From Paramoeba atlantica (lineage: Eukaryota; Protista; Discosea), in the NCBI GenBank assembly GCA_977017575.1, contig CDRNVI010000038.1, positions 62,001 through 126,000 of the forward strand: 64,000 nucleotides of DNA, read 5' to 3'. Positions 1,654-58,100 of this stretch are shown here, in pieces (the stretch's first letter is position 1; every line of letters begins with the position of its first letter). Both the position numbers and the translations under genes were made by a program. Under the pieces are notes generated by a model, which saw nothing but the letters and a program-made list of their open reading frames with translations, had not been told where the DNA came from and made no database searches.

Positions 1654-1928
1654 AGAAATCCACGGCGAGGGCATCCGGACATTAACATAATCAAATCACG
1701 AATATGATAAAGTAAAGAAGTATCTAATTGAAAACATAGCTAATGTTGAACGTCTACTTCTCGTTATGCTATGGTTCCTCTTATGATGCTAGTAGATTTC
1801 TCCTATTGCTGAATAACGCGCTGTATAAATATTCAAAAAGGGGCCCTGGTACCACACAATTAAACTCAGAATGTTGAAGAAAAGGGAATACTTTGTGAAG
1901 GGGCTTAGCCCCCCACGCTCCGCAGCCG
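1654..1928 (-). repeat. YR1 repeat B2 (copy of B1 at 2163-2437)
   Basis: 275-bp direct repeat, offset 509. Confidence 0.95.
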
Positions 1929-1950
1929 TGGCTGGGGGTTGGTGGGTGGG

Positions 1951-2163
1951 CTTCGAAAACGTGTAAATAAACTTTGAAGAATAGCCTTCACACAACACAA
2001 AATCAACAAACAGAACAATATTTCTACCAGAAACAATACATACATATTATCAATAATTTCACTTGAAATGTAATCATATAAAAGCTTAAAATACAGCGCG
2101 TACAATGCCCGCCGGCCACGTAAGTAAATAGCCCTCGCCTAAATTTCTTACCGTAAACTTTTA
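1951..2163 (-). repeat. YR1 repeat A2 (copy of A1 at 6422-6569 plus 65 nt)
   Basis: Matches 6422-6569 except for the extra segment 2079-2143. Confidence 0.93.
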
Positions 2164-2626
2164 GAAATCCACGGCGAGGGCATCCGGACATTAACATAAT
2201 CAAATCACGAATATGATAAAGTAAAGAAGTATCTAATTGAAAACATAGCTAATGTTGAACGTCTACTTCTCGTTATGCTATGGTTCCTCTTATGATGCTA
2301 GTAGATTTCTCCTATTGCTGAATAACGCGCTGTATAAATATTCAAAAAGGGGCCCTGGTACCACACAATTAAACTCAGAATGTTGAAGAAAAGGGAATAC
2401 TTTGTGAAGGGGCTTAGCCCCCCACGCTCCGCAGCCGCCAACCCGCTCACTCGTAATGAATTCCTTGTCACTGGTAACTAAAATCACTACCTGTATGAAG
2501 AATGCTCGAAAATTGACCAGACTTTCGTAGCGTCTCCAAAACCTAAACGAAACTATTTTTTTTTTTTTTTTTTTTTTATTATTATTCTATATAAACTAAA
2601 TTTCATATAAATACGGTTGAATCGAA

Positions 2627-5299
2627 CTATCGTGCAAAATTCCTACTGACCGGGTCTGCCGGGTTGTCTTTCGTTGAGACGTAATCGGCCTTGATGCAGA
2701 CGCCCCGGTCCTTCGCCCATTGCAAAACCTTACCGAGTTGGTTTGATATTCCTCCTGATTTTGAAATTTTTCTGTTTAGCGCTGCTTGGCACGAAGTGTT
2801 ATCTACCCATAATTGCAAGCACGTGCCCCGGGTGAAATGTCTCTCCAACTTCTGGAGGGAAAGTCTAACGGCTGTCGCTTCTGCCCTATTTACTTCGTAT
2901 TGCCAAGAGGATTTCCATTGCCCCCCCACGATGATCACTTCGCCTGAATCGAGGTAGAGGATGCCTCCCCATCCTTTCGCTGAGGCGTCTGTATACAAAT
3001 TATGCTCCCGGGGAGCTATTTCAGGATGCGGGAGAGGTTCAACCGGTATGTTCCTAACAAGTTCATTTCGCCACTGCCGTAGCATATCTCGTATTTTGTT
3101 CGGTAGATCCACTACCTCTTCGGCCATCTCCGGCATGCGGTTTAACAAGTTTATGCGGCGTTGACATATTTTAAGGGCGAAATAGTATTTTGGAATAATA
3201 ATTCCCACTACTGAGGAGCAGTACAGGAGGCGCCCCACCGTCGCCTCGAGCTCCAGAAATGTAGTACGTGTAAATTGATCCTTCTCCAATTTTGCGACAA
3301 CTTTGGGTCCCAGGTTGACCTTGTGTACGCGATGGTCGTACCTAACACCGTTAAATACGTACTCCTTCATGGGAAGGAGTCCCGAGTCTTTAAAGCGCGA
3401 TCCTGTCTCTTGCTCGCGGTCATCAACCCATTTCTTGTACTGACAGGCCTGCTGATCTGTACCAGCAAACCGTACACCGTCCACGTAGATATCTAATGCG
3501 CCTTGTGAAAAGGTTGATTTACAGTATCCCTTCATACCGGCGATCGTAGCCGTGACTGTGTGCATCAATTCCGGGGCGCACCGATGCCCCATCGGCAAAA
3601 CGCGCATTTCATACAACACCCCCGTGTCTGAATAAAACCGAAATTTTTGACGACATTCCTGCGGAATCGAGATTTGATAAAAACCACATACTAGGTCCCT
3701 CTTCAGACCTGACTGCGCCTTAACTCTATGCAAATATTTAGATGGATGTAGTAGGGGTACCTGAGGAACGTATTCACTCAGCCGAGCGTTGTCAGAACGC
3801 GTCCAAGAAATAAATCGTCGACGTTGCTTGCCCTCATCGTCCGTTTCAATTACCGTGAAAGGAACCAGAAATTGCATTGAGGGACGTTTGTTTTCTTCCT
3901 TTTCGGATACCGCAGAAATAATACCATGCTTAAGTAAGAGCTCGTGATCTGTATGGCTCAAACTTCCTTTCATACGAGGAGATGTTTCAGGGCAAGATGG
4001 CATGCGTAATAATTCTTTCCAAACCTGTTCGAATCTTGAGGCGGTAGCTGTAGACATCCAGCTTCGAATTTTATTCATGTCAATAGTTGGAACTCCCGGC
4101 TTGACGTGTAACGGAATATGAAAGTCCTTCGGCTTTGCTAACTTAGAACTCCGGCGTGCACAAACTAATGTATGTCGTTTTAAGTAAGGGACTTCTTTAT
4201 AACACTCTTGCATTTCTACTGGAGAAAGGGTCCGGGCAATCGCGCTGACACTCGGTGCGTACCCAGTGCTCTTGCTGTCGTCAACTGCTGAGCATTGTAT
4301 CGGAGAAGACTCTCTAAGCTCAGATGCTTTGTGAGGATTTGCACCTCCGACAAGTTGAGGTGGCCGTTGGCGACTTCCTGAAGTAGATACGTTACAGCCC
4401 CCAGTTTTATAGAGTGGGTGCCATACCCGTTTCCTAGCACCCTTCTTATTTCGTGGTACATCTCTCGAACTGTGGTCCTGCACAGTTTTTGGTTTTTCGG
4501 AAGGCGTCTCAAGTAATTCGCTATTTGCTCTGTCCCCGGTCCTGATATTATGGCGTGCATGTATGGGCGGTATGGATTGAGACGTGTTGTCTTTGTGCTT
4601 CTTCCCCAATAAATCACGATTTCCTGCTCGGCAATGCTCAGAAATTGGTCGGCCTGTAGCTCGGCGACTTCCGTCCAGCGCGCTGCAGCCTTCCAGCAAA
4701 TCAAGATTGCGATGGCCTGTGATGGCGTGACGCTTTTGTAAAGTTTCGTTAGCAGATACTGTGTTAGAGGTTGCATCTGTCGATGAGGTTCGAGAGCTCC
4801 CTGCGCTTGCAGCGCCTTTGAGTATAATTTCAGAGGAATTGTGTTTTCGTTCATTAGAGTGTACATCGTATGCAACCCGCGGGCGTACGCTAATCTTGTC
4901 GACATTGCCAATTTTTGTGCATCGAGGAATAAAACGGCGTTGAGAGCGGAAGGCTGTATCATTTTTACTCGACAAAAGTCCTCCATTCGACTCCATATTG
5001 CCTCTCTCGACCTCCACGTAGTGTGAGCCCACATGGGACGAATTGCGTCTCGTAACACCGGAGCGTTCGCGTCCTCGGTCTGGATCCCTAACATTTTGTT
5101 TGTCAACATAACGCGTCTCACTCTTGCTGTCATCGGCAACTCGGCGCGGTTCGAACTTCTCTTCACACATATATGATCCGTCAAGCTTGCGTTTTGACTT
5201 GTCTGTGTCACGAGTAACGGCCTCCTGGCCCTCTTCTGATTTCCGTCGGTGCTCACATATCGAGCACCGTTCCATACAAACTTTATGCGCGAAGCGCAC
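2627..5299 (-). CDS. YR1 reverse transcriptase-RNase H (frame open upstream to about 5508)
   Basis: RDLVCGFYQ, LPMG, YVDG; RNase H TDAS..GWG, NRAE, VDNTS, NPAD..SR; listed start is GTG. Confidence 0.92.
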   Translation of the reverse strand: MRFAHKVCMERCSICEHRRKSEEGQEAVTRDTDKSKRKLDGSYMCEEKFEPRRVADDSKSETRYVDKQNVRDPDRGRERSGVTRRNSSHVGSHYVEVERGNMESNGGLLSSKNDTAFRSQRRFIPRCTKIGNVDKISVRPRVAYDVHSNERKHNSSEIILKGAASAGSSRTSSTDATSNTVSANETLQKRHAITGHRNLDLLEGCSALDGSRRATGRPISEHCRAGNRDLLGKKHKDNTSQSIPPIHARHNIRTGDRANSELLETPSEKPKTVQDHSSRDVPRNKKGARKRVWHPLYKTGGCNVSTSGSRQRPPQLVGGANPHKASELRESSPIQCSAVDDSKSTGYAPSVSAIARTLSPVEMQECYKEVPYLKRHTLVCARRSSKLAKPKDFHIPLHVKPGVPTIDMNKIRSWMSTATASRFEQVWKELLRMPSCPETSPRMKGSLSHTDHELLLKHGIISAVSEKEENKRPSMQFLVPFTVIETDDEGKQRRRFISWTRSDNARLSEYVPQVPLLHPSKYLHRVKAQSGLKRDLVCGFYQISIPQECRQKFRFYSDTGVLYEMRVLPMGHRCAPELMHTVTATIAGMKGYCKSTFSQGALDIYVDGVRFAGTDQQACQYKKWVDDREQETGSRFKDSGLLPMKEYVFNGVRYDHRVHKVNLGPKVVAKLEKDQFTRTTFLELEATVGRLLYCSSVVGIIIPKYYFALKICQRRINLLNRMPEMAEEVVDLPNKIRDMLRQWRNELVRNIPVEPLPHPEIAPREHNLYTDASAKGWGGILYLDSGEVIIVGGQWKSSWQYEVNRAEATAVRLSLQKLERHFTRGTCLQLWVDNTSCQAALNRKISKSGGISNQLGKVLQWAKDRGVCIKADYVSTKDNPADPVSRNFAR

Positions 5300-5373
5300 A
5301 AGTATCCTGGCAATTTCGCTCGCTGCCTCTTCAAGGCTCGAGCACGAGTAGGAATTTTTGGGGTGGGGGACAA
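4216..5373 (-). CDS. YR1 tyrosine recombinase
   Basis: AAARW (Arg I), STKT (Lys), HSIK, TKH..LLRY; in frame with gag; listed start is TTG. Confidence 0.88.
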   Translation of the reverse strand: MSPTPKIPTRARALKRQRAKLPGYLCASRIKFVWNGARYVSTDGNQKRARRPLLVTQTSQNASLTDHICVKRSSNRAELPMTARVRRVMLTNKMLGIQTEDANAPVLRDAIRPMWAHTTWRSREAIWSRMEDFCRVKMIQPSALNAVLFLDAQKLAMSTRLAYARGLHTMYTLMNENTIPLKLYSKALQAQGALEPHRQMQPLTQYLLTKLYKSVTPSQAIAILICWKAAARWTEVAELQADQFLSIAEQEIVIYWGRSTKTTRLNPYRPYMHAIISGPGTEQIANYLRRLPKNQKLCRTTVREMYHEIRRVLGNGYGTHSIKLGAVTYLLQEVANGHLNLSEVQILTKHLSLESLLRYNAQQLTTARALGTHRVSARLPGPFLQ

Positions 5374-5376
5374 TCC

Positions 5377-6420
5377 CTATTGGATCGTCCGTCTTTCGCC
5401 GCGACGGAACGTTGTCTGCGTCTGTGCAGCGCCACTCGCCACCCCCCGGGAGAAAACCGGTTGACGTAGCTGGGGACAGTTCGCCCGTATATGCCCAGGA
5501 GCACGACAGTTATAGCACAGTTGCTGCTGCCCTTGGCGACGATTTATACGTGTTTGCTTCAATTGCTCTTCGAGCATCGTTTTACCATAAACGTCTTCGG
5601 GGGTAGAGACCTGGTGGAGTCTTTGCTGTACGCGCTCTACCGGCGCACCCGCAGCAGCCCAGTAATGATTACGGAGTTCTTCAATCAAGCCAGTTGCAAT
5701 TTCATAAAAATATCCTGTTGACCAGTCTTGCAGCTGACGAGCTGCGTAGATCCACTTTGTCAGAAGTTGGAACAGTCGTTCTCGCGCAGGCGGGGGATTA
5801 AAACGAACTCCTAACTCCGGGGTGTCCCGTAACTCGCGGATCAACTCACGCGGTTTAAACTCATCTTCTGACTCCACCCAAGGGCCCCACGTCTTCGGAA
5901 TCACCGGGGAAAAATCCTTGGGGCCCGACACCGGTACGCGCGCGATGGAAGTTACAGGGTTTTCCACATGCTCCCCCCCGGGCATCCTGGCCTGGACCTT
6001 CGCAAGTTCGATGGAGAAATAGTGTATGTCAGGAAACGGAAACCCGTACTCAACATCAGGCTCGTCGTCCCACCGGGCCTTCAACTCACTCCCCACCGGG
6101 TCTTCGGGATTGAGAAAATAAACTCGTCCCGTGACAGTGTGGCGCGCGTTGTCGTCCTTGTGTCCCCAAATAGCGCGAATCCATACGCGGTGGACCCGGG
6201 TAAGTAAAAAACGGACTTTTTGCGAAAAATCGGACTTTGCGGAATCACTAAGCGGGGTCGCTATATCCTCTCCTTGCAATATACCCTCAACCTGGTCAGG
6301 GTTGAGAGTATGACGGGTCGCCCGAGGAGAACTGCGAGGAGACTCAGGAGGTACCGGATCAGGGCTGCGTGCACGTCCGAGTGATATCGCTCTAGAAACC
6401 GCGCTCACAATGCGTGACAT
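5377..6420 (-). CDS. YR1 gag-like protein with CCHC zinc knuckle
   Basis: ATG 1 nt after repeat A1; CYNCRAPGHIRANC. Confidence 0.88.
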   Translation of the reverse strand: MSRIVSAVSRAISLGRARSPDPVPPESPRSSPRATRHTLNPDQVEGILQGEDIATPLSDSAKSDFSQKVRFLLTRVHRVWIRAIWGHKDDNARHTVTGRVYFLNPEDPVGSELKARWDDEPDVEYGFPFPDIHYFSIELAKVQARMPGGEHVENPVTSIARVPVSGPKDFSPVIPKTWGPWVESEDEFKPRELIRELRDTPELGVRFNPPPARERLFQLLTKWIYAARQLQDWSTGYFYEIATGLIEELRNHYWAAAGAPVERVQQRLHQVSTPEDVYGKTMLEEQLKQTRINRRQGQQQLCYNCRAPGHIRANCPQLRQPVFSRGVASGAAQTQTTFRRGERRTIQ

Positions 6421-6568
6421 TCTTCGAAAACGTGTAAATAAACTTTGAAGAATAGCCTTCACACAACACAAAATCAACAAACAGAACAATATTTCTACCA
6501 GAAACAATACATACATATTATCAATAATTTCACTTGAAATGTAATCATATTTCTTACCGTAAACTTTT

Positions 6569-18778: not shown

Positions 18779-21676
18779 TTAGAGCGTTGTTGTTTCTGAA
18801 TTTAAAAGAGATACATGGCCATGCCTGTCGCTCTCGTTCCCATGGCGTGAGGGTTCATCTGCTATGTTTTTCTCGGAGCAAATCCAACGGACCTCCTTGA
18901 GATAACCAGGTAGGAAAAACACGTGGTATAACCGGCGTAGCCACTCCATAATTAGCGGGGGTCCTGCCTTCCATTTGGACAGCCATGCCACAACGTTCTT
19001 ATTATCTGATATCAGTGTACAAGCCTTGATTTTTCTTTCCTTTACCAGTTTTAAGCCCATCTCTGCTGCGAATAGCTCCTTATATGCAATAGGCTTATCT
19101 CTGAGCCAGGCCGCAAAATTTCCAGAGCGATACTGAAGACTTCCGCCCTGCAGCCATGCTAGTCCCCACCCCTTCTCGGAAGCATCACAATACAATTCAA
19201 AGGTACTGGTTTCTCCCCTCTCCAATTTTCTAGGGGTGTTTGCCTCCACTCTATCGATTAGCGTAATAAGGCTCGAGATGAATTTCTGGGACATCTGGCA
19301 TGGTAAATCCCATAAGACTGGCTTAGCTGCCAATCTGCGTGCTCTCCCCTTCAGCCAATACATCACAGTTGGAAATTCGCACTGAGTAATACCTAACACT
19401 CTAGTTGCCCAGAACAGGGTCCCCAACACTTTCCAGATTAGTCGGTGCGTCGGCAAGCGATGCTGTTGCGCTAGTAACTTGAATGCCTCGCGTAAGTGTT
19501 TTAATTTATCAATAAACTGAACCGGCAGTGAGAGTTTCTTTTCCTCTAGATTTACCTCAATGCCTAATACTGTGCCCTTACTGGTGGGCTTCGTGGTGAC
19601 CGCAATTTCGGCGCCAACCTGCTTCGCACGTTGCAAAGTTTGGCTCAGGTCATCCTCTACATCCTCCTGGCTGGTTCCAAAACGGTAACAATTGTCAATA
19701 AAAGTCAGTGGATGTGAATTACTAACCGGAAGGTTGTGGATCAAGCTTGTAGCCGCATGACCAATTTTTACCGAAGAATGCCATCCCATGGGCAATGTGG
19801 CCCAACCATATGTCCTTCCCTTAATGCGAACGGCCAAGTAGGGCAGAACATCTTCTGGAAGCCCAAACTGATGGTACCAATTTCTTCCATCCGTCTCCCC
19901 GAAGAATTTGTTTTCCAGGACCGCCTTTTCAATATCCTGCAAGCTCGCTAACGTTAAAGGTCCTGGGACTATAGATTGTATCTCGTTGAGAGGAATCGCA
20001 TTCAAGATCACACGCATGGTTTTCTTCTTCGGCTTGGGAATCAAAAATGCTGTCATCCATATTTTTGCGGTTCTCCGTGGGATTCTCTTTATTACCCCGG
20101 ACCTCACCATCTCCTCCACGAAAGGTTCCAGCCTCTTCGATTCACCGCGATAACGAGGATCGTAATCCTTCCTCAACAAGCCCTTAAACTTATTCGCGTC
20201 CTGCACGAAACCGAATATTTTCTTTTCTTCTCTCACATCGCTTCCAGTTTTCAGTAGAAGTAGTTCTTCTACATTTACCCGTTTTACATCAATCGGATCG
20301 ATTGGCCAGTTCTCTTTTCTGGGATGGTTTCTCTCTCCAAAAAACGTCCTGCGCATAAAACTCGCATAGGTATAGGATACAAAATCACAGAGTATCCTCC
20401 AAGGAGAGGTGCCGGCACCGACAGGTGCGGCGACGCCAGCTCGCCCGTGGTGCTGAGCCGCGTTTAATGAGGACTCTTCCTGAGCCCTATTCCCATACCC
20501 GCGTGGCATGAGTAATCGCCCGGGTTCCTTCCCGGCGCCCTGAATCATGTCGTCCGATTTACCTTGTTTGGTATCCTCCATGTGGGACTTTTTCTTCCCC
20601 ACAATATTTCTGCGTCTCAGGGGTCTTTTCTTCCCTTCTTTTGTCGCTTCCACGCCTATGCTCGTGCGATGGGAAACATTCTCACCTAAACTCTTAAATT
20701 TCTTGGGAAAATCATCCTTACCTGGGTAAATAGATAGACTGGTCTCATCACGTGCTTTACCAGTACCATCTCCCGGAAATGTTTCACTAGGTGATTTTCC
20801 AGAATCGTCTCGAACAGAAACTCTAATAAGGCCCGTTCCATAATTTCCTTGGCTCGGTATGTGTCGAGAACGCCTACCTTGAATCCCTTTCCTACTGGAG
20901 CTGTTTCCTTTTGAGGGCTGAGTCTTACGCGAAAGCGGAGGCCGGACTTTAAGGTTATGCGACCTCGGTACGGTTTCTCTTTCCGAGGCGAGCTTCGTGC
21001 ATTTTCTTTCGTAGAAAAGGGCCCGCGGGAGAGTTTGATCTTTCTCGAGGCGCCTTAATTCCATGTGCCCCCTTTTAAGCCCCCTTGGAGGTGGATTTTC
21101 CTGCGCGTATCTCCTTCGCACTCGAGCGCGCCGGCGGTTCTTCCCATCTCTCCTCGCGATGACGTTAGCCTCGTGAAACCTCATCATTTCACGCTGAGCC
21201 TGAAGATATTTCCCCTCGAGGGTATCAGCTCTAAGAGCCTCCTTCCAGTAGTCGCCAAATTTCCGACCCATTCTGTGTTTTATTCGCAAATAATGTATCA
21301 CCTCCATAGATGGTTCAATCGAACGCATCGTGATAAACAAACCCGCCCTCGCACGAGAACAGCAATCAGCTAGGTGAGCTGCAATGGTATCAAGCGCCAG
21401 ATCTAGACTTACGATATCTCTCGATACTGATGAGGGATCTGCAGAGTGCCCGAAACACTTTCGCACCTCGTGCCTAAGCTTTCCAATAAGATTCTTTCTA
21501 TAAAGATCACTGCAAAAATGTTCGAACTTCCAATTTTGCGGCTTGAGGAGGATATCGGTCGACAGGTCGTGACAACTAGGGTCATAACTTCCGAATAACT
21601 TTTTTGGTGAGCTCACCCCTGAAACTCGCAATCCAACTCCTGAGATTTCTCCTTCACCATTAGTGTAGCACGCCAT
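18779..21676 (-). CDS. YR3 gag-linker-RT-RNase H single ORF
   Basis: N-terminus aligns to YR4 gag (HFCSDLY..NLIG); TDG..WYHQF, LPMGW, FIDN, CDAS..GWG, KELFAAE, ISDN, NIAD.PSR. Confidence 0.88.
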   Translation of the reverse strand: MACYTNGEGEISGVGLRVSGVSSPKKLFGSYDPSCHDLSTDILLKPQNWKFEHFCSDLYRKNLIGKLRHEVRKCFGHSADPSSVSRDIVSLDLALDTIAAHLADCCSRARAGLFITMRSIEPSMEVIHYLRIKHRMGRKFGDYWKEALRADTLEGKYLQAQREMMRFHEANVIARRDGKNRRRARVRRRYAQENPPPRGLKRGHMELRRLEKDQTLPRALFYERKCTKLASERETVPRSHNLKVRPPLSRKTQPSKGNSSSRKGIQGRRSRHIPSQGNYGTGLIRVSVRDDSGKSPSETFPGDGTGKARDETSLSIYPGKDDFPKKFKSLGENVSHRTSIGVEATKEGKKRPLRRRNIVGKKKSHMEDTKQGKSDDMIQGAGKEPGRLLMPRGYGNRAQEESSLNAAQHHGRAGVAAPVGAGTSPWRILCDFVSYTYASFMRRTFFGERNHPRKENWPIDPIDVKRVNVEELLLLKTGSDVREEKKIFGFVQDANKFKGLLRKDYDPRYRGESKRLEPFVEEMVRSGVIKRIPRRTAKIWMTAFLIPKPKKKTMRVILNAIPLNEIQSIVPGPLTLASLQDIEKAVLENKFFGETDGRNWYHQFGLPEDVLPYLAVRIKGRTYGWATLPMGWHSSVKIGHAATSLIHNLPVSNSHPLTFIDNCYRFGTSQEDVEDDLSQTLQRAKQVGAEIAVTTKPTSKGTVLGIEVNLEEKKLSLPVQFIDKLKHLREAFKLLAQQHRLPTHRLIWKVLGTLFWATRVLGITQCEFPTVMYWLKGRARRLAAKPVLWDLPCQMSQKFISSLITLIDRVEANTPRKLERGETSTFELYCDASEKGWGLAWLQGGSLQYRSGNFAAWLRDKPIAYKELFAAEMGLKLVKERKIKACTLISDNKNVVAWLSKWKAGPPLIMEWLRRLYHVFFLPGYLKEVRWICSEKNIADEPSRHGNESDRHGHVSLLNSETTTL

Positions 21677-21927
21677 GGGCACGGGGGCTGACCCTCGGAC
21701 GGTTCGATGAAAAGACGGTACTCTAGGAGTTTCGAGAACAGGACGATGTGTTGTTGTTTCTGAATTTAAAAGAGATACCTATTTACATTCAGAAATATTT
21801 AAATTCGTAAACAGGTATATTCATCAAATTTAGCATTTCAGAAACACCAACAAAACAAAATCGTTGATTTTTTACATATAAAAAATCCTTTTATGAATAA
21901 AATATCTTTTTTTTTTTTTTTTTTTTT

Positions 21928-32061: not shown

Positions 32062-34799
32062 CTACGATAGTGCTTTGCTCATTTGAGAACACAGCACAGT
32101 GCCGTTTAACTCCTGGAGGTGCATTATGAAATCTTGCACAACGATATCGCGATCACGCCCGCTAGCATCGGCCAGAGATTTCAGGAGAGCCAGGCCACTT
32201 TTGTTCATTGCTCCTCCGGCGAGTATTGATACGCATGTAAATTTTTCATGAGGCATTAGATCCGAGTTAACATACGTGTCGACTTTGCGTTTTTCGGCTT
32301 CCTGCATTAGCTGATTGCTCCGTTTACCGAGATTCGTCTTGGATATTTCATTTATGATAGTGAGGTCATAGAATATCTCACCGGACGCCCAGTAAATTGC
32401 TAAGTCTGGTCCGCTGCGATGGAATGATGCGGTTCCACACTTTTTCTGATGTTCATGTTTGCGCTGTTCATTCACCGATTCATTACATTTCAGGCATCGA
32501 TAAGTGGTGAATTGTCTCGGTTCCCGCTCGCATGGGATTCCGGTCTGAAGACAGAGGTCGTAAATATGACGAACGAGAGCATGATGTCGCGTTGTCGCAT
32601 TTGCGCCTGTGCATTTAACGCAACCGAGCAAGTGTGCTAGAAAGTGTTTTGATTCGAGAATCATTTTGCATCCAGGGCATATGATTTTGTCCGGCATACT
32701 CTTGTGCGCAAGACCAAGTCGTGCCATCACCATTAGAGAGAATTGAGATGATGGAATATATCTCGTTTTTCCTTGCAACCAATCGTGATTACCCTTTTCA
32801 CTGCACGCCTTTACCAAAGGTGCCAACTCCTCGTTTTTCTTTGTCAGCTCTTGATACGTCTTCTGATTGAGCATAGCCTCCGTTGCGGGGCCATCATTTA
32901 CTGATTCGCTGTCCTGCGCTATACCTTCGTCGCACGTTAATCGAGCTGATTTTGGTTTACATTGCTCAAGAGAAACGCGTTTAGAAGAGTTGTACGCGGA
33001 CGTACGAGAGTCAGTAGATGATGGCAGGCCGAGCCCACCTTTCTTCATCGGCAACCGGCACCAAGCGATGTGTTTATCTGTCATTTTGCCAAGCCATGTG
33101 TTCAACACCGCTTCAACATCGCTGTCGAATTTTTTGCATAGTTTTTCCGATGCTATTGGTGTGTGTACCCGGGTGTGGTACCTATGTCTAATGTTTACGC
33201 TTTTCGATAGTAGAAGTAGTGATATGTTGTTTAAACCCATGCGCTTGAGACGTCGGAATATGGCTTCGTGCTTTTCAAGCTTCTGTGTCAGACATTCACT
33301 GACTACTTCGTCGTTGCCTATGTATGCACCTAGGGTCTTTGTCGCTGAATGCTTGATTTTCACTCCTTCTGCTTCAAGTTCTGCTGGGATTGGTATATCA
33401 TGCTTTCCGCCAAACCACACGCATTTGTGTTTGGCCATTTTGACTCGTTTCTCCGCTAGGAGGCCGTGTAGACGACTGAATGCATCAGCTAACGCTTGTT
33501 GGTCCTCAGATGCTAGGTTTATGTCGTCGATGAATGCGAAGATTTTTACTTGTGGAAATTCCATTGCCGGGGTTTCTATGATAGGCTGCATAAATGCGCA
33601 AAAGTACAAGGTAGATAACGGAGATCCTTGTCGTACTCCAGCTGAGCTATATATCGTCTCGTAATGCTCACCGTTTTTTCCGTAATATAAAAGCTCAGAG
33701 GCCTCCGAATATTCCGCGTGAAAGAATCTACGAAAAGGGCGCAATGTGCATAGGCCGAAAACGACTTTTGAGATGTCGCTACGCATAGGCGAGTTAAAGG
33801 CATTAGCGAGATCGATTGATAGAATGGCTTTGCCTTCTTGATAATGGCTATGAAGACGGTGCACTACTTTTTCGCATCCAGACTGTACAGATACTCCAAA
33901 TTGTAACGGGGCGAAGAGTTTTTCGAGTGTATGTTCGTGCCGTGCTACTAATACGATTCCCGCCAGTTTCAGGAAGACTTCGCCTACGCAGATTGGTCTG
34001 ACGCCTTTGTCTGCCTTTGGTAACGCTACCAAGCGTGCTCGTTTCAGACGATTCATTACTTGTTTTGACAGAAGTCCATTTATCAGATCCGCAAACATAT
34101 AACACATGGAGACGCAACAAATTTCGTCGTCCAAGAGGAGCCGAATTATTGTGTCAGTGGTTCCCGTAGGTCCTGGTGCCGATCCTTTGGCAAGACGCCG
34201 ACCTGCGTCCCTGAGTTCTTCGGTGGAAATGATGGCTATCTCAGGAGAGTCATCCGGGAGCTCAAAGTTTTCATGATTCTGCGGATGCAGGTCCCGTAGT
34301 TTGGCGCATACATCGTCGTCTGTTAGTTCCTGTGGTCGCACTTCCTGATCTAGCACTTTTGTTGCCTTAGAGACACACCCTTCTAGGGCCAGGCGGGTCG
34401 CTTTTTTTATGGTGCGTGCTTCTGTTTTGCTCAGTTCCTCCGCATCTCCAGCGTTTTCATCCGGGATCGGCCGTTTTCTTCTTCGTCGAATCGACGCGGT
34501 TCTCACTACTGTTAACGAGTGCTTCATTGCGGATAGGACCCTATTCCAAATGTCGTTTCTGTCATCATACGAGTTGGTGGCGTAATTCCGCATAATGTCC
34601 CGGTAAATTGCTACGACACATGGTGCGAAATCGGCATGAATCGCTCGGAGCTTCGGCATCGGCGCTAAATCCAAATCTTCTTCAGTGTGTTGTGTGACGG
34701 GTGGGCTGGCAACCGGTATTGAGTTCATATGTTTATCCATAGCGGACTGTTTTTTAAGCCACTGAATCTTATATATTCGAACATTCGCTTGCGGGGGAA
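32062..34799 (-). CDS. Family D RT-RLE (3' part)
   Basis: RPICVGE, GVRQGSPL, FIDD, GGLG, CPGC, RH, GPD; frame open up to the YR2 junction. Confidence 0.9.
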
Positions 34800-35593
34800 T
34801 TGCTCATCATCCGATGGTAGAAAGGTAACAAAAATAAACTCTCAAAACTTAACAAGCATACACTTTCTATAAAGCTCACACTACTGTTCGAAACCAAGAA
34901 TCCATATTCAAACACTATAATTAACTCATAAACAAGACGTCATGACTATAACCAAAGAAAACAAAGTAACCTTCCCATCACACAACTTCTCACCTCTCAG
35001 CTTGCGAACGGGTCACGCGGGGAGTGGTTTGGGGGTTGGTGGGTGGGGAAACTTTAATCGCGAATAAATCAAACAGACGCTAAAATGAATCAAAATCTCA
35101 AATTCAATGTCAAATATATATCATCACTATATCATCTTTCGCCACTATATCATATTATATTTCGGGGACAATAATTCGGGGGGAGATTTGTTTCGGGGGG
35201 AAAACCCCCGGTAGGGGGCATCCTGAATAATGACGCCCCATCTCCTTTGATCAATTCTTATCGTAAACTTTAAGAATTGCTCATCATCCGATGGTAGAAA
35301 GGTAACAAAAATAAACTCTCAAAACTTAACAAGCATACACTTTCTATAAAGCTCACACTACTGTTCGAAACCAAGAATCCATATTCAAACACTATAATTA
35401 ACTCATAAACAAGACGTCATGACTATAACCAAAGAAAACAAAGTAACCTTCCCATCACACAACTTCTCACCTCTCAGCTTGCGAACGGGTCACGCGGGGA
35501 CCACCCATTCGCACGTACTCCAATCACCCAATCGCTTGTATGGCAGATAAATCCGGTGCCTACTCCAGACGTACCTCCCATTACAAAACATTT

Positions 35594-35650
35594 TTATATA
35601 TATATATATATATATACATTTTTATATATATATATATATTTATATATAGA
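35594..35650. repeat. (AT)n microsatellite in the YR2 3' region
   Basis: Interrupted TA runs. Confidence 0.85.
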
Positions 35651-35723
35651 GATATAGATGTAATATGAACTATATGCTAGAACTACTTTTTTTTTTTTAA
35701 TCTTATGTTGTCCAAAGTCTCTG

Positions 35724-38486
35724 CTACAATCTACTATACGGATCCGCAGGGTTATCCTCAGAACGAATATACTGCGCTTGGACTGCGATACCTCTCTTCT
35801 GCAAATAATTCAACAACCTACGAAGCTCTTCCGTGATCCCATCCGAGCTTGATACTTTCCGATTGACTGCAGCAACGCAAGATGTATTATCCACAAACAG
35901 GTCTACACACGTTCCTTTCTCAAAATGTTGCCCGTACTTTTCAAATGCCAATCGCACTGCGCGGGCCTCCGCTCTGTTTACTTCATACTCAAATTCCTGA
36001 GGCCACTGTGCACCTGTGCACAACATCTGACCGTAGTCAAGATACAAAACTGCGCCCCACCACGTGGACGATGCGTCAGTACACAAAACATGCTGATGCG
36101 GAACTGTGTCCGGATGACACGGTGGATCAACAGGAGATCGATGTAATAGAGCATCACGCCATTCCGTAAGAGTAACCCGCACAGGGGTCGGTAAAGGTAC
36201 TTGCTGGTCAAGAAGAGACGGTTCTCTGTTCAGCCGATTAATTCTACGGCGTACAATTTTTAATTCGAGATGAAACTGTGGTAAATGCATACCCATCACC
36301 GCTGACGCAAAAATCATTCGACCCAACGCTGACTCCAAAGAACCATACGTTGCTGTAGCAAAATCGTCCTGCGTTAGACGGCGCGTTAATTTTGGACCTA
36401 ACGATACCTTTCCTAGGCCATGGTGATACGTGATACCATTAAACGTGTAGGTCTGCGATGGAGGGGCTCCGGCATCCTTAAAACGCGCATTGACTTCCCT
36501 AGCCCGGTTGTCTACGAACCTGACGTATTGTTCAGCGATCACTTCGCTCCCCGCAAAACGGATACCATCTATATAAACATCGGCATTATCTGAAGAAAAC
36601 GCGGCATCCGCGGTACAAAATTGCTTATCCCCTTCCAGCGTCGCTGTTAGTACATGCATTATTTCGGGTGCACACCGATGCCCCATAGGCATTACATTCA
36701 TTTCAAACAAATCGCCTTTCGCATCCTTAAATCGAAACTTCTCTCTACATGTTAAAGGAATAACCACTTGCCAAAATCCACACGCTAAGTCGCGCTTCAC
36801 CGCCGTTTGTTCTTTTACACGATGCAAATAGTACGCTGCATGCTTTAACTCAACATGAGGATGATACGTTTCCTTAATTCGCTCGTTGTCACCTTGCGTC
36901 CAAGCAATGAAACGCCGTCGCTCCGACCCATCTTCGGCGGGCTCAACTACCGTAAAAGGAATTACCCAATCCCGAGACGGGCGCTTTGCAGCCTCGGCGG
37001 TAGTAACTCGTGTAATGAAGCCTTGGGCTTCCAACAATTCTACGTCACTAGCTGGTAAAAAAGATTTAAATTTCGGAGCGGGAGCTCGCTCATCGGGAAC
37101 TTCTAACATCATTTTCCACGTCTGATCAAAACGCATACGTTGCTCTTCGTTCATCATTCCTCGTAGTTTACGAATATCCATCTGTGGAATCCCACTTTTG
37201 ATATGCAAAGGAAGACCAAAATCTTTCGTGGTCGCCACTTTAGACGTGCGACGCGTGCGTGTTATAGTATGTCTTACCTTTTCTGCTGGAACATCATCAA
37301 TGTACTTGCTAAAAACAAGTTCCTCTTCTACCATATGTGCAGCTTTCTGGTCGCTTTCTGGGTCCCGAGGGCTAACGCCGTTGTCACTGGGTCGGAATTG
37401 TACCGGAGTAACGATTCGATTGACTGGTGCTTTGCGAGGTGCTGTACCTCGTCGAGACGGACGTTGCCGTCGGCAACCTGCTTTAACAACTGCGTAATGG
37501 CCCCACGCTTTGCCGAATGAGTCCCGTATCCGCTGCCGAGAATTTTGCGTATCTTCGAATCCGCCTCCGTCACCGTTGCGCGTGACATTGGTTGGAGGTG
37601 TCCGAGTTTGTGTATGTATAACGCCAGGCGATTTGTTCCCTCGCCCTCTACCACCGTATACATTGAGGGCCGATACGGGTTCAGACGGGACGTCTTTGTC
37701 TTCCGTCCCCACCAAATTACAATTCGCGTTGCGGATACCTCGTAAAAACGATCCCTGGTGAGCGTTGCTGTCTCCGTCCAACGGCTTGCCGCTTACCAAC
37801 ACAGCAGCAATGTATGTTTTTCGCTTGACGGTAGGTGGATCCATAACATGTTCAATTGCGTGGTGGTGAGGGGGGACATCTGTCGGAACGGCTCTGCCGC
37901 TCCCTCGGCCATGAGGGATTTGATGTAAAAACGCAGGGGATTGGTTTGCATGCCGGCCATGCTTAATATCGCCGCTACGCTCCGCGCGTAAGTCAACTTT
38001 CCCTGAATTTTGATCGGCATTTCGGCGATGAAAGTCACGGCGTGCAACGGAGTTATTGGAATTCCCTTCCAATTGCAGAATGTTGTTAGACGCTCCCACA
38101 GCCTGGCTCTGGCCTGCCACGTGGAGACGCTCCACATCTCCGACATTGCGTCCAATGCAGTGCGTACTTCTGGTGTGAGCACATTCACTCCCATTAGCAA
38201 CTTCATGAGGCTTAGTCGCGCTGGAGCGGTCTGTTGAAGACTCAAAGTACCGTTGTATAATTCTCCTGAGGTGATCAATCTCCCTTTTAAGTTCACCGAG
38301 TTGGGCGTATACTCCATGCTGCATATTTTCCTTCTCTTCATCACTTGCGTAGAAATTACTGTAATTCGACGTTTGAATTTTATGACAGTACTGGCCGTTA
38401 GTGTGGGGTCGTTTCAAAGACTCTTGCTGCTTGAAGCAGGGCCAGCCACCCGCGCCCGAAAACCCTGCTGGAAACGTTTTGGGCAA
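35724..38486 (-). CDS. YR2 RT-RNase H
   Basis: RDLACGFWQ, MPMG, YIDG, TDAS, NRAE, VDNTS, NPAD..SR. Confidence 0.9.
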   Translation of the reverse strand: MPKTFPAGFSGAGGWPCFKQQESLKRPHTNGQYCHKIQTSNYSNFYASDEEKENMQHGVYAQLGELKREIDHLRRIIQRYFESSTDRSSATKPHEVANGSECAHTRSTHCIGRNVGDVERLHVAGQSQAVGASNNILQLEGNSNNSVARRDFHRRNADQNSGKVDLRAERSGDIKHGRHANQSPAFLHQIPHGRGSGRAVPTDVPPHHHAIEHVMDPPTVKRKTYIAAVLVSGKPLDGDSNAHQGSFLRGIRNANCNLVGTEDKDVPSEPVSALNVYGGRGRGNKSPGVIHTQTRTPPTNVTRNGDGGGFEDTQNSRQRIRDSFGKAWGHYAVVKAGCRRQRPSRRGTAPRKAPVNRIVTPVQFRPSDNGVSPRDPESDQKAAHMVEEELVFSKYIDDVPAEKVRHTITRTRRTSKVATTKDFGLPLHIKSGIPQMDIRKLRGMMNEEQRMRFDQTWKMMLEVPDERAPAPKFKSFLPASDVELLEAQGFITRVTTAEAAKRPSRDWVIPFTVVEPAEDGSERRRFIAWTQGDNERIKETYHPHVELKHAAYYLHRVKEQTAVKRDLACGFWQVVIPLTCREKFRFKDAKGDLFEMNVMPMGHRCAPEIMHVLTATLEGDKQFCTADAAFSSDNADVYIDGIRFAGSEVIAEQYVRFVDNRAREVNARFKDAGAPPSQTYTFNGITYHHGLGKVSLGPKLTRRLTQDDFATATYGSLESALGRMIFASAVMGMHLPQFHLELKIVRRRINRLNREPSLLDQQVPLPTPVRVTLTEWRDALLHRSPVDPPCHPDTVPHQHVLCTDASSTWWGAVLYLDYGQMLCTGAQWPQEFEYEVNRAEARAVRLAFEKYGQHFEKGTCVDLFVDNTSCVAAVNRKVSSSDGITEELRRLLNYLQKRGIAVQAQYIRSEDNPADPYSRL
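37328..38413 (-). pseudogene. YR2 tyrosine recombinase with one TAA (37793-37795)
   Basis: LLCW*AASRW versus ICWKAAARW in YR1; KTKT, HSAK, AKH..LLRY. Confidence 0.87.
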
Positions 38487-39540
38487 TTACGCCACAAGTG
38501 CTCTGGGGATTGACACCCGAAACATAATAACTTGCGTTGAGAGAAATTAGACGGACGCGGTTGGGCTTGACCATAACGTGCGGTAGAATAAACGTGAGCA
38601 GATGAATGAGCGACTGCGCGGGAGTGTTGCTTTTGACGTTCCACCAATTGTTCATTTACGTGGTGGTAAAACTTATCATTGGGCCGCACTTCTTTTTTCA
38701 GCTTCTGGTGAACCAATTCGACATCTACCTGGCGAGCCTGCCAATACGCGTCGCGAAGAGTCTGAATGATTGCACGTCCCATTTCCAGATAGGGTCCTTC
38801 GTTCCAATTAGGGATGATCCGGGCAAAAAGAATCCACTTGAAGAAAACATTATTAAAAAATCGCTCCTGGCGTATGACGAATCCTCGATCCTGGTAATAA
38901 TGATTTACACGGAGTCCATATTCCGGCGCGTCGCGGAGCTCACGCATCAAGTCTCTCGTTCGAAAGCCTCCATCATCGAAATAATTAATCCACGGACCAA
39001 AAGTAATAGGCTCATACGGATCTAATGCGTTAGGATCAACTCCTTCCGGGATTTGTGCATTGGGATCGCTACTCAGTTGCGACGTTGGACATATTGGCCG
39101 TGCCCCCAGTTCTTCACGTAGCTCTTGGGTCGGAGGTTCATTTACATCCTGCGCTTCCTGAGCACTTAGGGGTCTTCGCCGAGACAACTTTCGTTGTTCA
39201 ACGAGATTCACTTCAAAATAATCTAAGTCGGGGTGTGGAAACTCGTACTCCTTCGAAGGCTTATCTTCCCATACCCCCATAACTTTAAGCCCTCCTTACG
39301 TAACTTACCATATAACGTTTGTCGCTTGCCGGAAACATCATCCTTACGACGAAAGGTAGCCATCACATGGGCCGACGGATTATCTCCCTGCATACCTGTC
39401 AATGTTTCGCGGGCCATCGTGGCAACTAAACTAAGCTCTTGCGGATTAAGCGGCTCGGTAGGCTCGAGCTGCTGCCCCGCCGGGGAAGAACTACGGGAAG
39501 ATCGTAAGGTACGGGTATCCGGACCGTCGATGAGCGGCAT
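38414..39540 (-). pseudogene. YR2 gag with a 1-nt frameshift in a G run (about 39275)
   Basis: CFGCQSPEHLWRNC knuckle; EYEFPHPD aligns with YR1 EYGFPFPD; ATG close to repeat A1. Confidence 0.82.
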
Positions 39541-39769
39541 AAAGAAACTTTAATCGCGAATAAATCAAACAGACGCTAAAATGAATCAAAATCTCAAATT
39601 CAATGTCAAATATATATCATCACTATATCATCTTTCGCCACTATATCATATTATATTTAGGGGACAATAATTCGGGGGGAGATTTGTTTCGGGGGGAAAA
39701 CCCCCGGTAGGGGGCATCCTGAATAATGACGTCCCATCTCCTTTGATCAATTCTTATCGTAAACTTTAA

Positions 39770-41171
39770 GAAGAAAACCTTTGAAGGTGTTGTCGACCTT
39801 GTGACCTTGAACTCCGATATACTCCATAGACAGCTTCGTTCTTACATTCCTGCGATTTATTGTAGCTACGGTACCTTTTGAAACACTCAACGTGGTTTGG
39901 CAATCAAAGCCCCAGGTCAGAAAACATACATCACCAGTTTTGGCATTGCCAATGGCATTGGAAATTCCTTCCGACGTCATTGGGAAGTTGTGTCGTGGGT
40001 CCATCGCGCTCGGGACTTCAGAATCGGGCTTCCTACTTACTCCGGTTTCGCTGGATAGATTTTCGGAGTCGGGATCGATCGGGTGTGGGGAGTGGCATTC
40101 ATGAAAAACATGGGACGTATTAGGAGATTCGGTTTCGCTTTCGATGTCCTGTGGGATCGCGTGGGTATCAACTGGTAGCGGCGATGGGAGCCGATTTTCT
40201 TCTGCCGCGTTTTGCGCATGACCGGTAGTTTGTGGCGTCGCATTAACGTCTGCAGTTTCCGCGAAGATGTCAAAGGCGCGTACGTCGTGTACATAACCTT
40301 CCCCATTGTAGGTGTAGCCTCTACTCATCATTTTCGTGTGAAATGCTTTGCGCTCGTGTGTCCAAGGAGATTCTCTTTGTGACTGAAGTGTTTCCGCAGG
40401 CTCGTTTCCGGTGTTGAAAACTGCTCCGATGGCTTGTGCGGCGACAGCGCACGTCTTCTTAATTCGGATACGCCATTTTCCTGTTTCTTTTGGCTCTCCT
40501 GACGACAGATCCGCGGGTGGTTGTTGCTCTGCGGACGGCAGCTGGGTCTCTTTGTTCGCAGGTGTTAGCGTTCGGTCTGTTCTATGTGTTATCTGTGGCG
40601 TGGGCGCCGACTGTGTAGGTTCCGATTGTGGACGTGGAGGTTCCGGTTGTGGAGATGACGGTTCTCGCTGATCTCGCGCTGGCCCTGGGGAAGGAATGAG
40701 CGGTAGACGGGGTGGTGATGGCGATTTCGGCGCTTCGGAATCGGCCGAGGACATCTGCAGAGCTCTCGTTCGCGCTTTACGCGAGAATGCGTGCATGCTG
40801 GGACGTGGGGCGGGTGGAGACGAGGACAGCACACCCGACGGAGGCGAAGTCGGTCCACATCGTGGAGGTGAAGGGTGCGAAGGAGATTGCACGTGGGGCG
40901 CAAATGGCAACTGTTGCGGAGGTGGTGGTGGCGGTGGCAGGGGCGATGGTGGTGGCGGCGATGGGGGCGGCGGTGAGGGCGGCGATGGGGGCGGCGGTGA
41001 GGGCGGCGATGGGGGCGGCGGTGAGGGCGGCGATGGGGGCGGCGGTGAGGGCGGCGATGGGGGCGGCGGTGGCGGGTCCTTTGGGAGCTTCTTGCGGCGC
41101 GTGGGGGGAAGCGATTGAACAACGGGAGCTACCCCCGTATTCTTCGCCATGGCACGCGTGAGCATGCCCAT
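39770..41171 (-). CDS. Family D N-terminal part (Pro-rich, beta-rich domain)
   Basis: MGMLTRAMAKNTGVAPVVQSLPPTRRKK; PPPSP repeats; in frame with 34799 after YR2 removal. Confidence 0.85.
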
Positions 41172-55132: not shown

Positions 55133-58100
55133 CTATATTGCGTTAGTAGTTTTCCGAAAACGAAAGCGTTCAACGCCACGTCTGTCGCCACCTTGAGAAG
55201 GGATGTCATCCAGCCTAATGCACCTGGAGGGCTTATCTTCTAGGTTTCTATCCGAGGGACACCACATAACTTCTGTAATGTACCCCTTCACTTTGAACCA
55301 AAAAAGTTTCTTAAGCCAACTCATCACTTTTGGTGGGCCTGCCCGCCAACGCGTTAGCCATGAAACCACATTCTTGTTGTCGGAAATTAAAGTGCTATTC
55401 CGTAAGTTTTTTTGTCTAACTAAATTCATCCCCTGCTCCGCGGCATACAATTCTTTATATGCAATCGATGAATCTTTCAACCAAAAGGGAAACCTTCCAG
55501 CCTTATATTTTAGGTCGCCGTGCTCTGTCCAAGCCAAACCCCACCCTTGATCAGAGGCATCCACAAAAATTTCAAAAGAAGCGACGCTTTTTTCGTTTAC
55601 TTTTCGAGGGCGATTCTCCTCTACTGTGTCAATAAGCTCTACAAGATCTGCAATGAACGCCTTTGACATAAAACAGGGTTTGTCCCATAAAGATTGATCG
55701 AATGCTAGCCTACGGGATCGACCCCGGACCCACAACATGACGCCTAAGAACTGACATTGCTGGATACCTAGAATTCGTGTGGCCCAGAAAAGAGTACCCA
55801 GTACCTTCCAAATTAGGCGATGAGAGGGAAAGAAACGACGTCGCTGCAAACATTGAAATGCCTCGCGTAGTGCAGCTAACTTTTGAAGAAAAAGTACGGG
55901 GAGTGAAAGAGTTTTCTGCTGGAGATCCACGTGTACTCCCAATATTGTGCCGCTCACCGTTGGTTGTGTAGTTACCAATATTTCGGCACCAGCACGGTCG
56001 GCTCGCTGCTGAATGTTTTGCAAATCCCCCGTGAGAGTTTCCGTATCATTCGCAAAACTATAGCCGTTATCTATAAATGTCAAAATTCGCTGTTTTTCTA
56101 TTCCCTGGTACAAGACATTTGTCGCGGCATGGCCTATTTTCACCGACGCCTGCCAACCCATCGGGAGCGTAGCCCATCCGTATGTTCGCCCTTTGACACG
56201 GACTGCGAAGTAAGGGAGCAGCTTTGGCGGCAAGACGAATTGATGGTACCAACTCTTGCCATCCGTTTCGCAAAAGAAATTGTATTTGGCTACCATGGTC
56301 TCTATATCTTTCAAAGATGCAAGGTCTAGAGGGCCTGGTACCATCTCTTGCATAGAGTTTAGCGGAATCGCGTTTAAGATGACACGCATAGATTGCTTCT
56401 TCACTTTGGGTATCAAAAATGATGTCATCCATACTCTTACCGCTCGTCGTGGAATACGCTTCAAAATACCTGCTTGGAGCATCTCGCGGAGCACGCGTCC
56501 TAATTTTTTTGATTCGCCCCGATAACGCAGATCACGGAACTTTTTCAACAATTGCATAAACTTTTCTGGATTAATAATATAATCAAACAGTTCTGCCTCT
56601 TCACTCATATCTTCTTCCTTAGCCATTCTGACTAACTCGGTCAGATTGATTCTGGCGGACGAGACGGCGTCCAGCGGCCAATCTCGTTCACAGGGACGGG
56701 TTCTCTCTCCACGCTGGATTCGTCGATTGTCAGGGAAGTGTATATTGACGTAGGTGGGGTAGGCGACGAATTCATACAGTATTTCCCACGGAGAGGTGCT
56801 CGCACCGACAGGTGCGGCGACGCAGGCTCGCCCATTACGGTGCTGAGCCTCGTCTTCTTTAAGTGACGCGCGTTTAGCGCTGTCTGAACTTCGTACTGGT
56901 CCTCTAGCGATGTTCCCTCCCCCACTGCGTTCACGTAGTCCGCAAGTTCTTTCTCCATAGCTCGCTTCCTTTTTCTGGTTTGTAACGGGGCGGTTAAGTC
57001 GGCTTTCAGCGGGTCTACTAGGTATCTCGGGACCCGGGACTTCGGAGGACTTGTGTCCGTGATAGAACCCTTCGGAAGCATGTGAACTACTCCTCGAGAG
57101 AAATCTTTTCGACACCATGTGGGGTTTTCGCCTTCGCCCATTTCGCGTAGCACCTCGCGCTCTGTGGTCAGGTACGGATAAGGTAGCGTCTGTTGAGGGA
57201 TATGCCGATGAGGAGTGTAATAAGGGGTGGGAAGGTGGTGAGAGTCGAATTTCTGAAGTCGAGAAACGGGAGTTCGTGGATGATCTTCGTCCATCGGGAT
57301 GGGGGGTAGCATTGCTCCTGCCTCGCGTGGTTGTTGTTGTTGTTGGAATGCCTCGAGTGGTGTGGGGAGGGATGGCGGGATTGATTCGCGAGGATCGGGA
57401 GTTTCTGAATGATCTTCCATCATCACGGGAGTTAACAAAGGTTCTTCCTCGCGTGACGTGAGGAGGGACGGCGGGATCGTGTTTGTTGGCTCGGGAAAAC
57501 GTGATTCGAGAGGTGTCTGCAGCCGATGACTCACGCCTGTTGGTACGGGGAGTATTGGTGGGTCTGTACGAGGGGTTCGGCTGGGGCAGAGCGGAGTGGA
57601 AATTACTCGTATGTTGTTTACACAGCTTGAAAAGCTTAGGCGTCTGGGGAGGCTCGCCCTCTGCAGGATTCCCCACCGATCTTTTGGTGTTGAGCAATTC
57701 GATTGAGTGACCACTCCCATCGTTTGATCGACGGATAGAATTGATCTGGGTCCGTTCGTCGGTCTTACCTCTTTCCTCAATGACTCGGGAGTACTTTCCT
57801 GCTGTATTTGAATGCTTCCCGTCTCCACGATAGTTTCGAGCGGCAGGAGTGTCTCTTCGGATGGTGTGAATCCTCTTTTCTCTTCCGACAGGGTAGTTCT
57901 TGGCTCGTCGAGATCTGGCTTTTCTTCTCTCCGGGATGTCGTGGCTTGATTGTGACAAATTTCCCGGGTCTGCGTCGTAGGATGCTCGAAAGGCACGGCT
58001 ACGTATTGTCCTAGTTTTCGAGACACCTCTAATCCCGCTATCGCTCTTGGGTCTAGAAACGAGCCGAGATACGCCCGCAGGGAAGCTTCGGAAACGTGCC

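Follow-up and report, generated by a model that had tools for sequence, protein, structure and literature searches.

The window analysed here (64,000 nucleotides of Paramoeba atlantica contig CDRNVI010000038.1, positions 62,001 to 126,000) is crowded with retroelements on the minus strand, among them the tyrosine-recombinase retrotransposons YR1, YR2 and YR4 and a related element, YR3, all in this orientation. YR1, YR2 and YR4 share a common plan: gag ends at a single stop codon and is followed in the same frame by a second open reading frame (ORF), and a very long ORF in the -1 frame opens 21-138 nt upstream of a slippery heptamer (70-259 nt upstream of the gag stop) and ends past the reverse transcriptase (RT) and RNase H (RH) domains. 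We consider it very probable, judging from these sequences and their relatives, that RT/RH is made as a Gag fusion by programmed -1 frameshifting just before the gag stop. The original prediction had proposed such a Gag-RT/RH product, and it is supported in so far as all of its predictions testable at the sequence level hold. This would be a known mechanism in a new setting, i.e., a -1 frameshift that leads into a long linker overprinted on another gene, the stop of gag being located in the long loop of a pseudoknot-like structure. The geometry of the sites, their conservation, the covariation of the helices and the open frame are matters of observation and are described in the following.

Read on the minus strand, the three heptamers (Table 1) occupy the positions and the gag phase that had been claimed for them, and their distances from the gag stop, which had been given as about 40-115 nt, are 72 nt (YR1), 42 nt (YR2) and 114 nt (YR4). 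Frame maps likewise agree with the earlier description of an RT frame that is -1 relative to gag and overlaps its 3' end, and they show this frame to be open by the time each site is reached; in YR1 and YR2, the heptamer does lie just 3' of the zinc knuckle, and the listed RT ORFs of these two elements do start with GTG and TTG, respectively. In YR1, gag codons start at coordinates equal to 0 mod 3, giving the phase G_GUU_UUC with GUU in the ribosomal P site and UUC in the A site. The heptamers of YR2 and YR4 are canonical; that of YR1 does not strictly follow X_XXY_YYZ, its A-site re-pairing being perfect and its P-site re-pairing near-cognate. A canonical in-phase heptamer is expected by chance at 0.05-0.17 per overlap, such that any single site is weak; the shift sites go far beyond chance because they are conserved across homologous elements. 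A second in-phase canonical heptamer in YR2, C_CCA_AAA (38483-38477, minus strand), situated 18 nt upstream, where the open -1 stretch begins, is absent from the relatives and is probably a chance feature.

Relatives were obtained by protein searches with the -1 ORFs, which yielded sequences from one ENA assembly, probably of the same genome, from Logan contigs of other samples and from the transcriptome of Papus ankaliazontas. Many homologues, 238 of them with E<=1e-30, are represented by protein sequences only. Eleven loci (L001-L011) were fetched, and the resulting YR1/YR2-type set comprises 13 elements (two in the window and 11 from the fetched loci) with protein identities of 30-59%. Wherever all three ORFs could be mapped, gag and recombinase share one frame and RT lies in -1, with the exception of the degraded L011, whose long RT ORF is in another frame than the one open at the site. 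An in-phase G_GNU_UUY is situated 27-72 nt upstream of the gag stop in 12 of the 13 elements (both window elements and 10 of the 11 fetched ones, L009 being the exception); together with two elements of the YR4 type, these bear out the expected conservation of the heptamer across copies. Its forms are GGAUUUU (six elements), GGAUUUC (one, L010), GGGUUUU (two), GGUUUUU (one) and GGUUUUC (two). The codon before the P-site codon has G as its third base in 12 of 12 cases, over five amino acids (P, Q, K, R, E), and the P-site codon, which encodes D, G or V, is GAU in 7/7, GGU in 2/2 and GUU in 3/3. With the codon usage of the elements themselves as the background, the probability that all these forced synonymous choices occur jointly is about 1e-10. 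Third-position identity among the copies is 0.31-0.33, and synonymous sites are therefore close to independent. Protein constraint was rejected as the source of the heptamer conservation, as the amino acids vary and the synonymous bases are fixed.

Concerning expression, the transcript-derived protein P0021 of the prokinetoplastid Papus ankaliazontas (strain PhM-4; EukProt) starts upstream of the -1-frame motif GFS..GG.W, from which it follows that the site is transcribed in a relative. For 54 long database homologues, inspection of the N-termini for the same GFS motif was uninformative, as gene callers place the start of these ORFs at later Met codons. A metagenome pattern scan for the site plus the S1/S2 arm (see below) gave 43 matches, all due to chance and without homologous proteins, and a scan of viral contigs with the RT part as the query gave no match.

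Downstream of the heptamer, the YR1/YR2 family exhibits a spacer of 5-7 nt, a G-rich arm S1 (GGGGUGG, GGGUGG, GGGGGA or CGGGGG) and, immediately next to it, a second arm S2. The partner of S1 is rich in C and lies a few nt 3' of the gag stop, and that of S2 lies 4-9 nt beyond, such that the order S1-S2-S1'-S2' makes the two helices cross. In YR1, the loop between the arms measures 65 nt and holds the gag stop within the loop of a 9-bp hairpin (5390-5368). As a MAFFT alignment of all 12 sites (A2) misaligned the distant members, the helices were counted on a nine-sequence alignment (A1), and L008, L010 and L011 were assessed by constrained search. In the crossing arrangement of both helices, the fraction of paired cells on A1 is 94% compared with 41-53% in slid controls, none of 500 shuffles reaches this value, and S2 shows changes on both sides in 4 of 6 pairs. 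S2 is also picked independently by RNAalifold, which predicts 10 pairs for it, 5 of them with compensatory changes, and S1 changes on both sides, in a compensating manner, in L008, L010 and L011. A strict pseudoknot search is passed by 10 of the 12 elements but by only 0-6% of composition shuffles. Since the loop geometry departs from the textbook H-type knot, the modelled structure of this family is called pseudoknot-like here.

A further view of the junction is provided by the YR4 family. L007 (a Logan contig of another sample, its gag 27% identical to that of YR4) carries A_AAA_AAC in phase at 715-721, 123 nt before the stop. YR3 lacks the recombinase gene, and its gag and RT/RH are fused in one ORF of 999 codons (identity to YR4 43-46% in gag and 55% in RT); at the homologous point it reads GKN-RRRARVRRRY (codons 21142-21113 = KN-RRRARVRR). 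YR4 possesses AKN in frame 0 and RRRARVRRAF in frame -1, with all eight codons common to YR3 differing synonymously, and L007 has GKN in frame 0, followed by PQRRRWRTRRQF in frame -1. The match of YR3, YR4 and L007 at this junction shows protein-level selection on the -1 frame from the heptamer onward, and YR3, a natural relative with a single ORF, has the very junction that is predicted for the transframe product of YR4. For the other two elements, the predicted transframe junctions are QPVF followed by LPGGGEWR (YR1) and QQGF followed by SGAGGWPC (YR2).

The -1 frame over the recombinase ORF (206-814 codons) contains no stop in 12 of 13 elements, whereas 5-27 would be expected from synonymous-codon shuffles (YR1: none compared with 12.2 expected); the 814-codon recombinase ORF of YR4 is among the stop-free cases. 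In the +1 frame, the number of stops is as expected from the same shuffles. Third-position identity is 0.325 in the recombinase compared with 0.314 in gag and 0.316 in RT, and a Pfam search of the -1-frame linker over the recombinase gave no match; with the third positions of the recombinase thus free, the linker is selected only to stay open. A conserved AUG does not occur in the -1 frame: 10 of 14 elements have none in the open stretch before the site, and the first one past the site lies between codon 16 and codon 372. Entry into the -1 frame must be near the end of gag. The alternative that the change from the recombinase frame to the RT frame takes place at the 3' end of the recombinase was rejected, as the -1 frame would then not have to be open over the full length of that gene.

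According to the proposed mechanism, a ribosome translating gag would encounter, 5-7 nt beyond the heptamer, the G-rich arm of a helix, which belongs to the crossing helices in the YR1/YR2 family and to a predicted GC stem in YR4, at a moment when its P site is occupied by GNU (or AAA) and its A site by UUY (or AAC). A fraction of the ribosomes would slip back by one base and miss the gag stop 27-123 nt downstream; these would traverse the recombinase gene from end to end in the -1 frame and reach RT and RNase H, giving Gag-linker-RT/RH, and those that do not slip would terminate at the gag stop. The slippage itself, its efficiency and the fate of the long linker are the part that we infer. 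More tentatively, one RNA domain might steer two recoding events, the -1 shift leading to Gag-linker-RT/RH and readthrough of the gag stop, by ribosomes that have kept the gag frame, leading to Gag-recombinase. The stop contexts in 14 elements, all of a leaky kind, are UAG-G (seven), UGA-C (five), UGA-A (two) and UAA (none), and in 8 of the 12 YR1/YR2-type elements the gag stop is part of the loop of a hairpin (4-9 bp) immediately 5' of S1'; both are raw counts.

It might be argued that RT/RH has an mRNA of its own (made, e.g., by trans-splicing of the spliced leader within the element) or that its translation begins at an internal start codon, the heptamers being incidental. The host does trans-splice, a spliced-leader-like sequence lying at 273-291, and the RT ORFs given by gene callers often start at internal Met codons. 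Such an origin would, however, offer no reason why, in 12 of 13 elements, the -1 frame upstream of RT should be free of stops over 206-814 codons, would leave the conservation of synonymous sites in the heptamer and the absence of a conserved AUG unexplained, and is difficult to reconcile with the fusion of gag and RT in YR3 exactly at the predicted junction; we consider it very improbable. An even smaller probability is assigned to the view that the heptamers arose by chance or are leftovers in copies undergoing decay, with no working signal. Single sites are indeed only mildly improbable (0.05-0.17 expected per overlap), the recombinase ORF of YR2 has an internal stop, and L011, L004b and L003 are degraded; yet conservation over 12 elements is strongest at synonymous positions, the helices covary, and all long ORFs are intact. 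YR1 and YR2 are moreover recent insertions, as their terminal repeats are 99-100% identical.

Termination at the gag stop and reinitiation at an overlapping start (AUGA or GUGA), a process known from victoriviruses, where an upstream pseudoknot assists, is less probable again. AUGA is present in L007 and L004b and GUGA in YR4 and L010, the conserved structure adjoins the stop, and 13 of the 54 long database homologues (P0008-P0163) start with MT, which implies AUG-AC over UGA-C. Against this, none of the seven UAG-type stops has an overlapping start, and AUGA occurs at 2 of 7 UGA-type stops (2 of 14 overall), which is near the 1-in-4 chance level; the open -1 frame upstream of the stop, the in-phase conserved heptamer and the conserved -1 peptide RRRxRxRR, which starts immediately 3' of the heptamer and about 100 nt upstream of the stop, would be unexplained. 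Least probable of all is that the frame changes in the RNA itself and not on the ribosome, through editing or through slippage of the polymerase on the U4 or A6 stretch. A short homopolymer is present in both types of site, and the corresponding position of L009 is occupied by eight consecutive G, but the conserved G_G prefix, the spacer of 5-7 nt and the downstream helices would then be needless, and the DNA contigs are without length variation at 5452-5458. To our knowledge, U4 and A6 runs are also shorter than known transcriptional-slippage sites.

Several observations weigh against -1 frameshifting as the source of RT/RH, or at least against parts of the proposed signal. L009 (609-700; a Logan contig of another sample) retains the layout of gag and -1 RT, but has at the expected place the run of eight G with an in-phase G_GGG_GGG. 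G_GUU_UUC of YR1 would require imperfect re-pairing in the P site. The original prediction suggested folding the 80 nt downstream, and this check revealed no unusual stability: over 80-150 nt, minimum free energy (MFE) z-scores range from -0.46 to +1.0, no better than shuffles; as the folds are no more stable than shuffles, the structural support comes from covariation and not from energy. The geometry of the pseudoknot is odd (L1 of 0-2 nt, a middle loop of 24-65 nt, and L3 of 4 nt in the YR2 subgroup), S1 contains a mismatch in YR2 and L005a, and it is invariant in the nine closest copies, where it overlaps conserved peptides of both frames (PTP, PHP). For YR4, a constrained search found no pseudoknot, and only two frameshifting members of its family are available. 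An unconstrained linker of 360-810 residues is an odd component of the product, and the one candidate RNA run contained none of this sequence, the other runs being DNA-like.

The predicted arrangement can be compared with gag-pol of retroviruses and long terminal repeat (LTR) retrotransposons, in which the shift site is A_AAA_AAC with a pseudoknot in the type of mouse mammary tumour virus and human T-lymphotropic virus (MMTV/HTLV) and U_UUU_UUA with a stem-loop in human immunodeficiency virus 1; the L-A virus uses G_GGU_UUA. Shared features are the in-phase heptamer at the 3' end of gag, the spacer of 5-7 nt, the downstream helix or pseudoknot, a pol frame in -1 without its own start, and a Gag-Pol fusion predicted to be made by a minority of ribosomes; the YR4 heptamer is the A_AAA_AAC of the MMTV/HTLV type. 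Despite this similarity, the present elements possess a tyrosine recombinase and split direct repeats and neither protease nor integrase, their shifted frame first crosses a complete second gene as a linker of 360-810 codons before pol, and in the YR1/YR2 family the gag stop is located inside the long loop between the pseudoknot arms. Murine leukaemia virus expresses gag-pol by readthrough of a UAG-G stop with a pseudoknot downstream. Equally, all seven UAG gag stops found here are followed by G and the recombinase ORF follows directly after the stop in the same frame, whereas this likeness bears on the recombinase ORF and not on RT, and is drawn from stop-context counts.

Concerning the heptamer itself, cardioviruses and arteriviruses shift at G_GUU_UUU, stimulated by a bound protein and not by an RNA structure, and G_GUU_UUY is found in three elements of the family. 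G_GAU_UUU, the commonest form here (6 of 12, plus G_GAU_UUC in L010), is an established shift site of pea enation mosaic virus 2 (PMC5009743). These viral sites are replicase signals of RNA viruses, whereas those of the present family are accompanied by a covarying RNA structure at 5-7 nt.

Extensive overlap of the recombinase and RT ORFs is described for the DIRS order, with its DIRS, Ngaro, VIPER and TATE elements (PMC6681497, PMC3266345, PMC8547959), and the A1-[ORFs]-B1A2B2 layout for Ngaro and VIPER-type elements (PMC8547959, PMC6681497); single-ORF TATE copies, like YR3, are reported from Bodo saltans (PMC6681497). The gag-like, recombinase and RT/RH ORFs and the repeat layout of the window elements resemble VIPER and TATE of kinetoplastids as well as DIRS1 and Ngaro, a likeness drawn from published descriptions. 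A slippery site or frameshift signal is not mentioned in this literature (PMC6681497, PMC3266345, PMC8547959), the coverage of which is incomplete, such that an earlier suggestion is possible; nor is there an entry for these elements in the accessible part of a 2016 recoding review.

Each of YR1, YR2 and YR4 is classified, on domains and repeats, as a tyrosine-recombinase retrotransposon of the VIPER/Ngaro type (DIRS order) with RT and RNase H (Table 1). RVT_1 (Pfam) is matched in YR4 with 31.2 bits (cut-off 29.6) and under the cut-off in YR1, and the RT_RNaseH match is under threshold. The same-frame ORF after gag is assigned to the tyrosine recombinases: ten homologues share the motif R..K..HxxR..H..Y (alignment A3), their profile finds the phage integrase chains 5dor and 5c6k in a PDB profile search (E=9e-4), and PF00589 is matched below threshold in L008 (E=2e-4) and YR4 (E=0.015). 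In YR2, this ORF is broken after 206 codons by an in-frame TAA (37793-37795, minus strand), despite the 99-100% identity of the terminal repeats. The gag of YR4 has an RGG-rich tail and no zinc knuckle, and split direct repeats were not found for this element, only a 30-nt repeat. In YR1, a contig joint 2437->6422 with 22 nt between was considered as an empty site and rejected, as the repeat map identifies it as the B2-22nt-A2 junction. At 273-330 (minus strand; leader part 273-291), directly after a long poly(A) run, the window contains a spliced-leader-like sequence, ...ACAGTTTCTGTACCTTGTTG, from which the host leader is identified as of the kinetoplastid/diplonemid type.

Table 1. Coordinates of the elements, reading frames and predicted recoding signals in the window.
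Feature	Position	Strand	Details
YR1 shift site G_GUU_UUC	5452..5458	-	5458..5452 = GGTTTTC; 72 nt before TAG; identical heptamer and phase in L011
YR1 predicted downstream RNA domain	5345..5445	-	6-nt spacer; S1 GGGGUGG 5445-5439 : CCACCCC 5366-5360
YR1 predicted S2	5438-5432 : 5351-5345	-	CGAGUGG : CUACUCG; crosses S1
YR1 element	1700..6550	-	A1 6422-6550, [ORFs], B1 2209-2437, A2 1951-2079, B2 1700-1928; split direct repeats 100% identical
YR1 gag ORF	5377..6516	-	First ATG 6516, TAG 5379-5377; ORF list and frame map
YR1 CCHC zinc knuckle	5476-5517	-	Pfam zf-CCHC E=1.6e-5
YR1 tyrosine-recombinase ORF	4216..5376	-	Gag frame, directly 3' of the single gag stop
YR1 -1 frame continuation	2627..5458	-	Linker of about 410 codons over the recombinase gene, then RT and RNase H; TAG 2629-2627; frame open 5509->2629 = 960 codons (frame map)
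YR2 shift site G_GGU_UUU	38459..38465	-	38465..38459 = GGGTTTT; 42 nt before TGA; canonical; identical heptamer in L005b
YR2 predicted downstream helices	38391..38451	-	7-nt spacer; S1 GGGUGG 38451-38446 : CCACAC 38406-38401, one G.A mismatch
YR2 predicted S2	38445-38440 : 38396-38391	-	CUGGCC : GGCCAG
YR2 element	34797..39772	-	A1 39544-39772, B1 35274-35500, A2 35048-35276, B2 34797-35023; split direct repeats 99-100% identical
YR2 gag	39280-38414	-	Stop TGA 38416-38414
YR2 -1 ORF	38486-35724	-	Frame open 38486->35726
YR2 CCHC knuckle	38524-38483	-	
YR3 element	18410-21911	-	Repeat-bounded, similar split-repeat form; ORF 18779..21778
YR4 shift site A_AAA_AAC	59203..59209	-	59209..59203 = AAAAAAC; 114 nt before TGA; canonical
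YR4 predicted stem-loop	59142..59196	-	6 nt past the site; GGGCGCG 59196-59190 : CGCGCCC 59148-59142, inner hairpin; MFE folds, energy ordinary
YR4 coding region	55133..59871	-	Gag 59871-59086 (TGA 59088-59086); recombinase-frame ORF 59085-56641, 814 codons
YR4 -1 ORF	59347-55133	-	1404 codons; open 59347->55135; RT at C-terminal end

Some further observations concern the relatives and the assemblies. L010 (ENA contig ctg3704c, 20.9 kb) is a head-to-tail array of a related element with a period of 8124 bp, the unit of which also contains a minus-strand ORF of 360 aa and an ORF of 825 aa; the suffix of its name suggests that the assembler called the contig circular. At L005 (153-3611), the -1 (RT) ORF of one element runs without a stop and in the same frame into the gag of the next, over 1153 codons, which suggests a tandem or recombinant pair. 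In L009, GGGGCC...GGCCCC is situated around the stop, 3' of the G run. The MT starts of the 13 database homologues indicate that the UGA-C context of the gag stop is common across the wider family. At 5430-5463 of the window, the de Bruijn contigs of three runs break or branch; about 30 nt over the shift site and the S1/S2 arms are exactly common with family copies, and the flanks differ.

Published reviews describe the overlap of recombinase and RT without explaining it, and the frameshift signal, if true, would explain it: it would account for the way in which tyrosine-recombinase retrotransposons translate RT, the ORF of which lacks a start codon and shares part of its length with the recombinase gene. 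It would further provide a testable and well-defined -1 frameshift signal in Euglenozoa, consisting of a non-canonical heptamer family and a covarying pseudoknot, and a clean natural case of a frame kept open purely as a conduit, stop-free and without amino-acid constraint. For annotation, it would mean that RT ORFs should be joined to gag at the heptamer and not at an arbitrary GTG, TTG or internal ATG. If both recoding events were true, three proteins would be made from one start codon, with RT reached only via an unconstrained frame overprinted on another gene.

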